From Paraphysomonas bandaiensis (taxonomy: Eukaryota > Protista > Chrysophyceae), in NCBI GenBank assembly GCA_965644295.1, contig CBFFRP010000172.1, positions 1 through 64,000 of the forward strand: a stretch of 64,000 nucleotides of DNA, written 5' to 3'. Numbering within the stretch: the first letter of the stretch is position 1; every line of letters begins with the position of its first letter. The notes below the pieces were generated by a model. The model worked only from the letters and a program-made list of their open reading frames with translations, was not told the DNA's origin and did no database searches. The translations under genes and the position numbers were made by a program. This document shows, in pieces, positions 55,534-64,000 of this stretch.

Positions 55534-58432
55534 ATGATGAAGTATTTTATCCCCATTGGGTTACTTGCCTTCATTACGGGTGTTAACTCAGTGACTGTGG
55601 ATATGATTAATGGTACAGAAGTAGTTGATCCATGGCTTGAAACTGGATTTGTATCTATATCTGACAGATATTGGACAAGCGTTGAGACACTGGGCACTAC
55701 ATTCAAACCAGACTCTGTGATATTTGTCAGTTTACCTGATGTGGGTGGTCGGCACTATACGACTGGTACCCCTACCTCGATACGTATCACGAACAAAGTA
55801 TATAATAATGGGGTGTATACATTTGATATGAAACTCTTCCACCCGAATGATAGCTACTGCAGTAAAGAGTTTTATATTCCTAAATATCTGGAGAAACCTG
55901 TGTTAATTTCTTGGGTGGTAGCTAACAAGGGTGTGTATAACATCAGTGGGCATCAGTTCGTGTTGGACAGTGGCCTCGTTAATCGTACGCACAACCTCCT
56001 TGCTGGTGTAGGCGATACAGTTGATGTATTTAATTTTGAGTTCCCCACTGGATGCAATGCGAGCAATCCGAGTCAGATTTGCGCTTACCGCCAATCCCTT
56101 CCTCTTGAAAACCTAGGCGCTGTCTCTACTATTCAGACCTTTGTCAACGAGCACTATCTTCTGACACGTACATCCCGCATTAGGCGTCGTGATGTTACTA
56201 TCATTCTCACACCTCATGACTCATCAGATCCTTCGTACTTTATGATGGGCGAACACGAGGAGGTTGCATATATGGTTTTCGAGACTGGAGTCGTAATTAG
56301 CTGTGTGGAACGTGTGACGTTCGAGACGGTTCGATTCGACGATGTTACCAGTGAAGCTCTTTATTATTCTTATCACTTCTCCTATAAGTACGCCCCTGGT
56401 ATTTACGGAAGTTTGATCAGTCAAAATAGTCTTGTTGACTCTACTGGTGTTCGTGTTTTTGAGAGGACTGTGAGTGACGCTTATGTCATTACCCAGGAAG
56501 ACCAATGTGTTGAGAATCAAACTATTCATACGACTGAGGAATCCGTGGCTGCTCTTGTCGTTGGAGAGCTTTACAGTGCCGGAACTGAAGTGTGTGTGGT
56601 TAATTTCGTTCCACTTGAGTTTGGCTGTGACTATACAATACTCCTCTATGATTTGTTTGGAGATGGATGGGGAAATATTGAACTCGTTGTGACGACCGAT
56701 GGTTTCAGTCGAAAATACTCCCCTGATTGTAGCTGTCTTCAGATAGATATCTATTCTGATAGCTGTAATATTACTCTCAATATGACATCTGATGGAGACC
56801 CCATTGCTCCTTGGGAGGTGCTTTGGGTAACAGAGATTGGAGGGGAGACCTGGGTGGGTGATTTCGACTCAACTTTAAAGGCTAACAATCAAACTGTATG
56901 GTTTTATGACGACATGGTCGATTACGATCCGGAGAGTGATGTTAATGCTTGTCACGAGTGCAAGCACCCTCCACCCAAACCGAAGCCTGGGCCTGGTGGG
57001 TCTAAAGGCAAGGACGATGACACAACTACTGGTGATGATAAAACCACCCGTGATGATACCACCACTGGTGATGATGGTGCTGGCGATGATACTGTTGGTG
57101 ATGATGCTGTTGGTGGTGATGACACTGCTGCCGGTGATGATGGGGCTAGTGGTGGTGATGGCGACGGCAATGGCGAGGGCAGTGGAAAAGGTGCTGGTAA
57201 GGGTAAAGGGAAACGCCCTCCTGCGAAGGTTATCGTTGATCTATTCGATCATAAGAAGAATGGTGAGTATTTGTTTTCTTATGCTGCTGTTGTCTTACTT
57301 ATGGAATTTAGGCTGGTACGATGACAGTGGTGACTTCACTGATGTATGCGAAGGTGATGTTTGTGGGAGTCAGGAATGTGAAGATGAGGAAATTCAAGTT
57401 CCAAACATCCTCCACTATCCTCAGTATTTCATAATGAATGAGGATCGCACCAAGCTGATCAAATCTGGAACCATATGCAGTGACAACCGCGGGGTTGAGT
57501 TTTGCGAGGAGGTATTGCCTCATGATGGACGCTTCGTCTTCCGTGTGGCTGGCGAGAACCCACCGGGCGACAACGCTACTTGGTCTTTCTGTGGGCGCGA
57601 TGGAGGGATTAAGGAAGAACTGCAGTTCAGCATGCGCGCGGGCAAGTGTCATCCAGGGGATCAGTTCACTGCAGATGACTACTGCTCCGGTGTTACCACA
57701 CTTCTCAGTATTGGGGCAGTTCTCACCATCACAGATGTGTCTGCTGGCACTCTCTCCGAGTTTGATACAAAGACATTACAGCAACAGCTTACAGCTGTGG
57801 TTCCTGTCGTTCGTAATGTGAAAATATCTTCATACCAGCTGTCCGGATCTAATATCGAAGTTCAGACAGTAATCGTTGTTGCGGTTGAGGACTATGGTCT
57901 TGACGGCACGATCTTTTCTAACAAAGAATCTGTCTTCAGCACTGTATCAGATGCTCTTGCTTCCCCGATATCTAGTGGAGCTTTCCTTTCTGTCCTCCAA
58001 AACTCACTACGAAATTCTCCCCAGGGTGCTTCTGACGTGTTGTTGAAGGCCACTTCTGTATCAATTGACACAGTGGAAATGTCATCCTATGAGTATGTCA
58101 TGGGTATGAAGACTGACAGTGAAACTACTGAGTCTGCTGTTGAGGAAGAGACTGTAACGTCATCATCTAAGTCTAATGTGAACAGCTCCCCAAGTGGCAC
58201 TGTTCTAATCCTTTGTGGAGCTGTTGCTGGTGTTATTGCTGTAGCATTTGTGATCGCTAGAGCTGTTCGGAAATCGCGAATGGGCACCCCGAGTCACTTG
58301 CCCCTTCCCGACAACAGTGAACATGTTTCACTTGAATTCGATGACAACGCGGAGGAGGATACTATCCCTACGTTTGAGCTGAATGTCCAGGCGACGCAGC
58401 ATTCATACTTTAAGTCTTCTGAGAGGGTTTAA
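55534..58432 (+). CDS. Type I cell-surface membrane protein; 2 exons (intron 57263-57311)
   Basis: Signal peptide MMKYFIPIGLLAFITGVNS; beta-rich Cys-containing ectodomain; LYDLFGDGW and LFDHKKNGW motifs flanking a Gly/Asp/Thr linker; TM TVLILCGAVAGVIAVAFVIA followed by RAVRKSR. Confidence 0.85.
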
Positions 58433-60378: not shown

Positions 60379-60711
60379 TTTACATTAGTAAAAAAGGTAA
60401 CTATTTAGTAAAAAAACTAGTCATTAAATAGTTAGATTTTTAACATTACAATGACTACGTTGACTAGGTGGATGTAGGTGTTTATCTAATCATGACTAGG
60501 TTTAATACTATAATTGGCTAGGTTGAGTCATTTATTGCTTTGACTTTACATTAGTAAAAAAGGTAACTATTTAGTAAAAAAAACTAGTCATTAAATAGTT
60601 AGATTTTTAACATTACAATGACTACGTTGACTAGGTGGATGTAGGTGTTTATCTAATCATGACTAGGTTTAATACTATAATTGGCTAGGTTGAGTCATTT
60701 ATTGCTTTGAC
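60379..60711. repeat. Near-perfect tandem duplication (166 + 167 bp)
   Basis: 60379-60544 is repeated at 60545-60711, apparently differing only by one A in a homopolymer; rich in TGACTA(G/C)G motifs. Confidence 0.93.
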
Positions 60712-61115
60712 TAGGTTTTTACACCGAAAATAGTATGACTAGGAAATTCACCCAATTTGACTACGTTGAATAATATATCTCGAGATAACTTTTTTATTTC
60801 AGTTGAATAAATAGGACAATAATCATTTACAGAATATGATATGATGGTTAAACCTTAAATTCATCAATACAAAATGATTCTTCGTTTATTATCATCTGGT
60901 GTGACTACGAGGGCTGTACTACTGTCGCGAAATCTTGCACGGAGTGCAATATACATGACCTGCATTCTATTGTTCCCTCGCTGTGCGTATATGAGGATTG
61001 CTTGTTCATGCAAAAAAAGTGGCAAACAGGTGATTGACTCAGCCACAATGGTAATATATATAAGATGGGTCACTTATTACTATTGTCAGTACTCAAGCAC
61101 ATGATTGCTAGACAT

Positions 61116-61692
<577 letters not shown>

Positions 61693-62049
61693 TTATATGC
61701 CTCTTCGCTCAACTGACAGGTTAGCCAAAGTGACAAATATGTAACTTAGAAGCCACATACATACATACACATACCTACATTGGGGCTACTTGTATTCTCT
61801 CAAACCATTATTTGCTTTCTCCTCATCGTATCTTCAATCGATTTTCAGTTCCACAAACTGAAAACTGGGGAGAATATGGACTCAGTTTATAATAATGCAT
61901 CTATCCTCTACAAACACCATATCTGACTTGGAGTGAAGTATCAGAAGAGTAACATCAGGCTCATTCATGTATCAAGTGACACTATAATGTGTTTATACTC
62001 CTAGATTATTGGTGTGGGATAACTATATACATCACTGGTTGAAACTCTA

Positions 62050-64000
62050 ATGGATAGTACGTTAAATATTTCGCCGAATTTATATGCTCGTAGATTACTT
62101 CGAGATGGAGACTCATCCTTCAGATGCGGTAATCTATCATCTGCGGAGAAGTGTTGGACTGATAGTATGAAATCTGCGTGTTCGTTTACTTGTTTTGATG
62201 CCGGTAAATATATTCCTTTATATATCTGTGTATTGTAATGTAGGATGTCATGTGATTATAGGGACCATATTTACTGCTGGAGGAAAGTTGGCTCATTTAT
62301 ATCATTCACAAAATCGTGAAATTGAAAGAAATGTGTGCATACAACAGGCCATCGCAGCCTACGATAAGGTATTTTCTTCTGAAGAACATCCGAAAATTAA
62401 GGCCATGGTAAACTCCTTACATGCCATGAAGTCAGTTCCTTGTACGGAATCCAGAAAGGTACCACCTATTAAGTCCACTGGGAATAGTGCTGCGGGCAAA
62501 ATAATCTATTCGAAAGATGAATTGATATCTATTCGTGATTCGAGTAGTCATTGTACCAGCATGAAATCGACTGGGAATAGCGTTATGAACAGAACAATCG
62601 ATTGGAAAGATAAATTGATATCTATTCGTGATTCGAGTATTCATGGTGCCAGCATGCAATCGACTGGGAATAGCGCTGCGGGCAAGTTAATCTACTCGAA
62701 AGATGAATTGATATCTATTCGTGATTCGAGTAGTCATGGTGCCAGCATGAAATCGACTGGGAATAGCGTTATGAACAGAACAATCGATTGGAAAGATGAA
62801 TTGATATCTATTCGTGATTCGAGTATTCATGGTGCCAGCATGCAATCGACTGGGAATAGCGCTGCGGGCAAGTTAATCTACTCGAAAGATGAATTGATAT
62901 CTATTCGTGATTCGAGTAGTCATGGTGCCAGCATGCAATCGACTGGGAATAGCGTTATGAACAGAACAATCGATTGGAAAGATGAATTGATATCTATTCG
63001 TGATTCGAGTATTCATGGTGCCAGCATGCAATCGACTGGGAATAGCGCTGCGGGCAAGTTAATCTACTCGAAAGATGAATTGATATCTATTCGTGATTCG
63101 AGTAGTCATGGTGCCAGCATGCAATCGACTGGGAATAGCGCTGCGGGCAAGTTAATCTACTCGAAAGATGAATTGATATCTATTCGTGATTCGAGTAGTC
63201 ATGGTGCCAGCATGAAATCGACTGGGAATAGCGTTATGAACAGAACAATCGATTGGAAAGATGAATTGATATCTATTCGTGATTCGAGTATTCATGGTGC
63301 CAGCATGCAATCGACTGGGAATAGCGCTGCGGGCAAGTTAATCTACTCGAAAGATGAATTGATATCTATTCGTGATTCGAGTAGTCATGGTGCCAGCATG
63401 AAATCGACTGGGAATAGCGTTATGAACAGAACAATCGATTGGAAAGATGAATTGATATCTATTCGTGATTCGAGTATTCATGGTGCCAGCATGCAATCGA
63501 CTGGGAATAGCGCTGCGGGCAAGTTAATCTACTCGAAAGATGAATTGATATCTATTCGTGATTCGAGTAGTCATGGTGCCAGCATGCAATCGACTGGGAA
63601 TAGCGTTATGAACAGAACAATCGATTGGAAAGATGAATTGATATCTATTCGTGATTCGAGTATTCATGGTGCCAGCATGCAATCGACTGGGAATAGCGCT
63701 GCGGGCAAGTTAATCTACTCGAAAGATGAATTGATATCTATTCGTGATTCGAGTAGTCATGGTGCCAGCATGCAATCGACTGGGAATAGCGCTGCGGGCA
63801 AGTTAATCTACTCGAAAGATGAATTGATATCTATTCGTGATTCGAGTAGTCATGGTGCCAGCATGAAATCGACTGGGAATAGCGTTATGAACAGAACAAT
63901 CGATTGGAAAGATGAATTGATATCTATTCGTGATTCGAGTATTCATGGTGCCAGCATGCAATCGACTGGGAATAGCGCTGCGGGCAAGTTAATCTACTCG
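62050..64000 (+). CDS. Protein with short helical (TPR-like) N-terminus and in-frame 31-aa tandem repeats bearing YxxxxLphi motifs; candidate eIF4E-binding protein (3' truncated by window)
   Basis: Exon 62050-62203 plus 40-nt GT-AG intron (62204-62243) plus exon from 62244 join in frame (..FDAG|CHVIIG..) and stay open through the repeat array to 64000. The start may lie further upstream. Confidence 0.75.
62474..64000 (+). repeat. 93-bp coding minisatellite, >=16.4 units, two variants (A/B) in a 651-bp higher-order repeat
   Basis: Unit starts at 62474, 62567, 62660 ... 63962 (step 93). Order A B A B A B A A B A B A B A A B A. A = STGNSAAGKLIYSKDELISIRDSSSHGASM(K/Q); B = STGNSVMNRTIDWKDELISIRDSSIHGASMQ. 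Confidence 0.97.

Follow-up and report, generated by a model that had tools for sequence, protein, structure and literature searches.

A tandem array of canonical eIF4E-binding motifs lies at the end of a 64,000-nucleotide stretch of Paraphysomonas bandaiensis DNA (the window; G000:C172:1-64000, from a contig, C172, of 66325 bases in total), inside a gene that continues beyond it. The gene is transcribed, is spliced in frame and, as judged from sequence, is its genome's only member of an unnamed protist family whose other members carry the motif once. We propose, with a probability of about 0.6, that its product is this previously undescribed family's 4E-BP-like competitor of eIF4G, made multivalent through recent tandem amplification of the canonical motif.

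The array encodes 15 canonical eIF4E-binding motifs

In the 64-kb window, Tandem Repeats Finder detects a 93-bp period that runs from 62477 to the window end (16.4 copies, 86% matches). The whole array extends past this point and occupies positions 62477-64596 of the contig, or 22.8 copies. The part inside the window is given below with one representative of each of its two unit types.

62477..64000, + strand: tandem array of 93-bp (31-amino-acid) units, comprising units 1-16 and the start of unit 17
62834..62941, + strand: representative A unit (unit 5 and the 5 residues before it), with the motif KLIYSKDELISIR; this piece was used for the eIF4E co-fold
62756..62848, + strand: representative B unit (unit 4), RTIDWKDELISIR; Asp replaces Tyr, with Trp one position later

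The full array has 23 units, 15 of type A and 8 of type B, in the order ABABABAABABABAABAAABAAA. A preliminary description of this DNA had reported a stop-free frame through nine complete A units and a partial tenth, and had read them as a protein with nine or more eIF4E-binding motifs. Translation of the window gives the same count, with the window end at 64000 truncating the tenth A unit (unit 17) and with 7 B units alongside; for the full gene the figure becomes 15, not 9, because the array runs beyond the window. Translation also shows that the frame of position 62051 is free of stops across the 93-bp units, whereas both other frames hit stops in each unit.

The A units share the consensus TGNSAAGK[L/I]IYSKDEL[I/V]SIRDSSSHGASM[Q/K]S, in which K[L/I]IYSKDEL[I/V]SIR forms the motif core. 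All 15 match Y....L[LIVMF] as well as the extended pattern [RK]..Y.[RK]..L[LIVMF]..[RK], in agreement with the earlier claim that the repeat fits every extended 4E-binding position. When random 31-residue units were simulated with the composition of the window, the short pattern appeared in 4.5% of draws and the extended pattern in 3e-5. Elsewhere, the 18,772 amino acids of the window's other open segments contain 14 matches to Y-x4-L-phi. The array is 23% Ser and 8% Gly, and the motif does sit in the Ser/Gly-rich setting first described for it.

The B units follow the consensus TGNSVMNRTIDWKD[E/K]LISIRDSSIHGASMQS, and all 8 are without the motif Tyr, having Asp instead and Trp one position on. 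At the DNA level they differ from A units by 12 base substitutions within 22 nt (unit positions 14-35) and by one more at position 71. Among the A units, variation inside the motif amounts to few events in total and is either synonymous (K8, Y11) or conservative (L9I, I17V), while outside the motif it is mostly non-synonymous. The units are almost identical in DNA, and their arrangement in AB and AAB blocks is the signature of recent unequal exchange.

The array gene is transcribed and spliced in frame

The gene is predicted to span approximately 982 codons. Exon 1 occupies 62050-62203, the intron that follows is 58 nt long, and exon 2 begins at 62262 and ends at contig position 65053, just ahead of a stop codon at contig positions 65054-65056. 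The frame runs approximately 150 residues beyond the array, and no signal peptide is apparent by eye in exon 1. The parts upstream of the array are as follows.

61933..62049, + strand: 5' untranslated leader (minimum extent), in the 363-bp head-to-head gap with a ubiquitin-fusion gene
62050..62203, + strand: exon 1, an ATG plus 51 codons plus one base, MDSTLNISPNLYARRLLRDG...CFDAG; it starts the conserved N-domain
62204..62261, + strand: intron of 58 nt with GT..AG ends; its joint is present in RNA contigs of X1, X2 and X9
62262..62476, + strand: exon 2, first part, with the helical N-domain (TIFTAGGKLAHLYHSQNREIERNVCIQQAIAAYDKVF...) and a linker

Public RNA from 16 runs in 8 studies, poly-A marine metatranscriptomes included, covers part of the stretch, and four of these runs were compared in detail with L016:1-3400, where L016 is C172:62001-66325. 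RNA contigs of X1, X2 and X9 (three runs from three studies) end exon 1 at 62203, bearing out the proposal that transcription and splicing lead from an upstream ATG into the array frame. Of the intron first suggested, 62204-62243, the donor at 62204 holds; the acceptor has to be moved 18 nt further, as the RNA contigs place the intron end at 62261. The corrected intron measures 58 nt rather than 40 nt and removes six codons (CHVIIG) from the product, leaving the frame unchanged. A 524-nt X1 contig spans L016:1-202 and reaches 68 nt upstream of contig position 62001.

Spliced contigs leave the unique N-terminal part and enter the first unit, reaching L016:514, and other contigs lead from the last units through the stop to approximately contig position 65167; both borders of the array are thus crossed by RNA. 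The C-terminal part is also present in X5, a poly-A marine metatranscriptome. Searches treated exon 1, the exon 2 pieces and the units separately, and the joined product is known only through P0001, a 362-amino-acid JGI protein that is 98% identical and results from an independent but collapsed assembly of this mRNA. In P0001, exon 1 is joined to three units and the tail, and the sequence across the intron reads ...CFDAGTIFTAGG....

In the C-terminal tail, an X9 RNA contig omits 45 nt in frame, at L016:2764-2808 (C172:64764-64808), with GT..GT ends. This omission, unique to X9 among the runs compared, may reflect strain-level allelic variation or splicing at non-canonical sites.

Relatives carry a single copy of the motif

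A HMMER search of 1.84 billion representative proteins returned 18 hits. Besides P0001, seven of them (P0005, P0007-P0011 and P0017; 197-276 amino acids) match the N-terminal part at query residues 2-141, with 35-54% identity and E values of 4e-8 to 4e-4 (phmmer). P0015 and P0018 match the N-domain only, in several stretches, and the weak long hits P0002-P0004, P0006, P0012-P0014 and P0016 were rejected as compositional matches without the repeated motif. Further searches added P0019-P0026, bringing the relatives to an overall range of 197-333 amino acids; the only additions from a word-indexed protein search with P0010 and with alignment A2 were P0019 and P0024-P0026. The same kind of search with the whole of exon 2 gave no match among proteins 0.55-1.75x the query length. 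Scans of metagenome contigs with alignment A2 and the back-translated YSKDELISIRD found nothing, which says little, as close records may lie outside the scan.

The resulting family (P0005, P0007-P0011, P0017 and P0019-P0026) comes from marine and other metagenome and transcriptome assemblies at JGI, ENA and Logan, and all of its members are unnamed or called 'hypothetical protein'. They share a common plan. A helical N-domain of approximately 110 amino acids (GVIF.AS.KLA.L..SQ.REIE.NV.IQQAL...VF) precedes a disordered linker that carries one canonical motif, Y-x4-[LI], mostly of the form Y-x-[KR]-x-[EQD]-L-phi-x-I-R. Then, 13-20 amino acids past the motif, comes a second conserved element (RP.NELYGEI or P.IL.SY..I; in general P..[EL].Y..I), followed by a basic Lys/Ser-rich stretch and a C-terminal amphipathic element, W..AL..GIA.ALG.DHI.V, with which the array gene's version, LDKWAADLSSGLAQAVGDDHILV, aligns. 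The array gene shares with the family the N-domain, the intron position, the placement of the motif between the N-domain and the basic stretch, and the C-terminal element, and no paralog of it was found elsewhere in its genome.

Single-motif orthologs were sought among these relatives and found, with the Tyr kept and an aliphatic residue at +5. Examples of their motif are SIYSKEQLISIRDN, FRYSREELLIIRNN, IKYTRSELMIIRNT, VSYTRQDLMIIRDS and LVYPKEQLMAIRNS. Alignments A1 and A2 have few invariant columns, and the Tyr and the +5 Leu are two of them; in P0024-P0026, which read RY[IV]Y....I, the +5 residue is Ile. The +6 residue is hydrophobic in 7 of the 12 relatives aligned. Scored with a profile made from the relatives' motifs, A units reach 19-23 bits and B units 4-8.5 bits (21.7 bits for unit 5 and 8.4 bits for unit 4, the two representatives), and B units are probably poor eIF4E binders. 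In the array gene the second conserved element occurs after the last unit only, as EPPLYREVIV, which implies that the amplified piece is the canonical motif alone. Nor do the sequences support the B unit as a non-canonical partner of A, given that the family's own second element differs from it.

The family also shares its gene structure. The exon 1 segment is kept in P0010, P0019, P0020, P0024 and L032:6594-6824, with the same break at ...FD[AP]G, and the intron position after these residues is conserved. The record P0024 is a gene call that runs through this intron, and at L032:6594-7497 the two exons have been called as two genes, the upstream one ending ...QFDPG.

The fold of the N-domain was approached through these relatives. 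Pfam holds no family for it, and a profile of alignment A1 found nothing below E 0.3 among PDB sequences. ESM Atlas features point weakly to TPR clusters (0.91, with recognition under the tool's mark), and a Foldseek comparison of the P0010 model with the PDB gave no match at E <= 0.001, the look-alikes being KLC-TPR and MIT only. The domain thus appears weakly TPR/MIT-like in its models. The AlphaFold2 (AF2) model of P0010 places helices at 54-118, with a predicted local distance difference test score (pLDDT) of 72-87, and shows the motif as a lone short helix (132-141) with the remainder at low confidence. In this model the picture is the usual one for a linear motif in a disordered chain.

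A units are predicted to dock on the dorsal surface of eIF4E

The genome contains at least 5 eIF4E-family loci. The best by Pfam score, on contig C108, is an intronless frame with HPLQ and T-V-E-S-F-W, and it served as partner for structure prediction.

L009:1402-2067 = G000:C108, - strand: eIF4E paralog, co-fold partner (residues 18-206)

Its T-V-E-S-F-W is close to S/T-V-E/D-E/D-F-W, a segment that includes V69 and W73 and constitutes the eIF4G/4E-BP-binding site of eIF4E (PMC3388326). A co-fold of one A unit (36 amino acids) with residues 18-206 of this eIF4E gave an ipSAE interface score of 0.83, compared to 0.02 for the best of 3 controls, which ranged from 0.00 to 0.02. When the tool was calibrated, 51 of 78 solved complexes attained its mark, as did 2 of 108 mismatched pairs. 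Agreement between the runs covers at least 88% of contacts, and the partner has a pLDDT of at least 64. On the eIF4E side the contacts involve H24-P25-L26-Q27, V61, E62, F64, W65 and residues 126-137; on the peptide side they involve K13-K18 (KLIYSK, where the Tyr is Y16), L21, I22, I24 and R25. The model predicts the canonical dorsal-surface mode with Tyr and Leu as the core contacts, using the equivalents of human H37-P38-L39, V69, W73 and L131-L135.

By eye, the C108 eIF4E has Tyr at the position of the cap-stacking W56 of human eIF4E (EYRAS) and keeps the equivalents of W43 and W46; from its sequence, this paralog may not be class I. The paralog on C430, which has introns and reads T-V-E-H-F-W, looks closer to class I.

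Two further comparisons bear on the eIF4E-binding reading. Exon 2 scores 27.1 bits against the Pfam family eIF_4EBP (PF05456; cut-off 24), a value summed over the repeats with no single stretch passing, and units 18-23 score 22.7 bits with one passing stretch. Among the relatives, 1 of 9 matches this family (E 0.01). Only profile positions 32-63 are matched, and on this evidence the score is a similarity of the motif segment, not homology to 4E-BPs. The genome's own eIF4G candidate (G000:C258, L041; MIF4G at 38.8 bits) carries MYIYCKAELLKLK approximately 112 amino acids upstream of MIF4G. Its motif, IYCKAELLKLK, and that of the A unit, IYSKDELISIR, are alike at Y0, K+2, E+4, L+5, +6, +8 and +9. 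The proposal that the units bind eIF4E has thus gained support in silico from the relatives, the co-fold with the organism's own eIF4E, the Pfam segment and the likeness to its own eIF4G motif.

Comparison with known eIF4E partners

The closest known counterparts at the motif level are 4E-BP1/2/3, the metazoan and fungal translational repressors of Pfam eIF_4EBP. Like them, the array protein has Y-x4-L-phi with basic residues at -3, +2 and +9 in a disordered chain. However, it shows no homology to them outside the motif, adds a helical N-domain and a C-terminal element absent from 4E-BPs, and carries 15 motifs where they carry one. It contains neither the RAIP sequence nor the TOS-like F[EDQS][MLIV][DE][LIVME] of 4E-BPs. 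No unit contains [ST]P; the protein has a single such site in exon 1, three more in the C-terminal tail, and no others. By sequence, the array protein is not a member of Pfam eIF_4EBP and resembles it at the motif alone. Compared with its own eIF4G, which has one motif upstream of MIF4G and promotes initiation, the array protein has no MIF4G and would compete.

Other partners combine a canonical motif with further elements. 4E-T, Cup, Mextli and GIGYF, motif-defined partners of eIF4E or 4EHP, pair a canonical motif with a second element 15-30 residues downstream and recruit other factors through a separate domain. Among canonical-motif partners, a non-canonical second motif at this distance contacts the lateral surface of eIF4E. 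The plan of the array protein resembles theirs, though the sequences are unrelated. The 4E-T motif, YTKEELLDIK, is very close to YSKDELISIR of the A unit, and the GIGYF form, Y-x-Y-x4-L-phi, is resembled by the Y-x-Y-x4-I of P0024-P0026. None of these four is known to carry a tandem array of canonical motifs. Neuroguidin reportedly has three eIF4E-binding motifs and would share with the array protein the presence of more than one per chain; its motifs are said to be few, dispersed and non-identical, in an unrelated protein, in contrast to a tandem array of 23 units. In the literature accessible to us, a search found no protein with a multivalent or tandem array of canonical eIF4E motifs. It also found no 4E-BP described for diatoms or stramenopiles, which is a gap in the findings and not proof of absence.

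Weighing a multivalent competitor against other explanations

In the mechanism that we propose, a 31-residue piece bearing the canonical motif alone has been amplified by recent unequal exchange to 23 units, of which the 15 A units keep the motif and the 8 B units have lost its Tyr. Each A unit would fold into a short helix, dock with it on the eIF4E dorsal surface and compete there with the organism's own eIF4G motif. A single chain could then hold several eIF4E molecules, or rebind one of them with high avidity, and the outcome would be that eIF4E and its capped mRNA are withdrawn from initiation or clustered.

Several observations weigh against this mechanism. The co-fold score may partly reflect memory of solved eIF4E-peptide complexes, and would then report likeness rather than binding; nor can the co-fold single out a partner among the approximately five eIF4E paralogs. 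Single units fall short of every Pfam threshold and give no match to eIF_4EBP. Five relatives have a non-hydrophobic +6 residue (R, Q, H or K), three of them together with Ile at +5, and because of these deviations the strict consensus is not universal in the family. The near-identity of the units in DNA marks the expansion as young and makes selection on copy number unreadable. Inside the array, the word depth of RNA contigs is 2-3.5x that of the unique flanks, compared to a genomic 31-mer multiplicity of 10-14x; the RNA-source strains may have fewer units, contig depth may behave nonlinearly in repeats, or the assembly may over-count. Finally, an AF2 single-sequence model of 10 units is an all-beta solenoid (mean pLDDT 60, predicted template modelling score (pTM) 0.59, no residue at or above 90).

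The age and RNA depth of the array invite the explanation that an ordinary eIF4E partner, acting through a single site, carries a minisatellite as a passenger. The working motif would be the last unit together with the element downstream of it, and the other 22 units would be young, neutral, possibly strain-variable or over-assembled, and without sponge or scaffold function. The AB/AAB blocks of near-identical units, with their mark of recent unequal exchange, are what it expects, as are a second conserved element found only at the last unit, an array RNA depth 4-5x below the genomic copy-number prediction, and a single motif in every relative found. Yet the extra A motifs are intact and would lie exposed in a Ser/Gly-rich chain, and binding by one of them should mean binding by all, however they arose. 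Such variation as the A units show spares the motif, and the array is held in frame between two conserved domains. We consider this account unlikely, while taking it seriously. A different partner for the Tyr/Leu helix, such as the protein's own TPR/MIT-like N-domain or another helical-repeat receptor, would make the eIF4E likeness convergent. Y-x4-L-phi is short and common, as its 14 matches in the 18,772 amino acids of other open segments illustrate; one subclade has Y-x4-I with a polar +6; and the N-domain weakly resembles the peptide-binding TPR and MIT folds. By chance, however, the extended pattern would seldom arise (3e-5 per unit). The Pfam 4E-BP profile aligns to the motif, the motif copies that of the organism's own eIF4G, and the co-fold sets Tyr and Leu on the dorsal surface of eIF4E with controls at 0.00-0.02. 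We consider a different partner quite improbable.

Alternatively, the array could fold into a structured repeat that buries the motif, as a beta-solenoid or 31-residue helical toroid, and have a role in structure or at the surface. The AF2 solenoid (pTM 0.59) would fit such a role, and phmmer against PDB sequences matches the units to a designed 31-residue-repeat toroid at E 3e-4. That match arises from the common period and from S.EELL words. AF2 is known to give unrealistic beta-solenoids for perfect repeats (PMC11795689), and we set the low-confidence model aside as belonging to this documented class of artefact. With 23% Ser the array has few core-forming residues, the relatives' motif is modelled as a lone short helix in a low-confidence chain, and exon 1 has no signal peptide by eye. 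We regard a structured array as very improbable, and the multivalent 4E-BP-like competitor as the better account of the gene.

Neighbourhood of the array gene

A ubiquitin-family gene with a C-terminal extension lies at 61348-61686 (- strand; Pfam ubiquitin, 113.6 bits), in head-to-head orientation to the array gene. With 363 bp between their ATGs, the two genes may share a bidirectional promoter. Poly-ubiquitin arrays on C243, C71, C565 and C333 match this ubiquitin gene at 82-86%. Upstream of it, at 60379-60712, is an AT-rich 167-bp direct repeat (2.0 copies, 99% identity). Farther away, 55534-58432 (+ strand) holds two long overlapping open frames of 596 and 508 amino acids with no Pfam family; the 508-amino-acid frame has a sub-threshold match to EB1_binding (20.5 bits, cut-off 25).

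Implications of motif amplification

The extra copies may soak up eIF4E as a sponge, raise avidity or scaffold a condensate, or may be neutral passengers. The preliminary description had suggested a possible sponge or condensate role, in which the N-domain might recruit other partners. In the most ambitious version, the protein would be a natural sponge or scaffold that gathers up to 15 eIF4E molecules and their capped mRNAs per chain, driving storage granules or buffering free eIF4E; a strain-variable array length would set translational capacity, and the B units would be spacers or second-site contacts. We hold this version as a speculative and somewhat doubtful one.

To our knowledge, a single short motif defines the partners of eIF4E, and each known partner binds one eIF4E molecule. 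If the binding is true, nature would here supply 15 canonical motifs in tandem within one protein, and with them a ready means of testing what valency does to competition with eIF4G, to the buffering of eIF4E and to the condensation of messenger ribonucleoproteins. Its single-motif relatives form a candidate family of eIF4E-binding repressors that is small, conserved and testable with peptides. What appears new is that the normally single motif of a family has been amplified to 15 good and 8 altered copies in a transcribed gene of a marine protist, and that, if these copies do bind, one chain may engage many eIF4E molecules.

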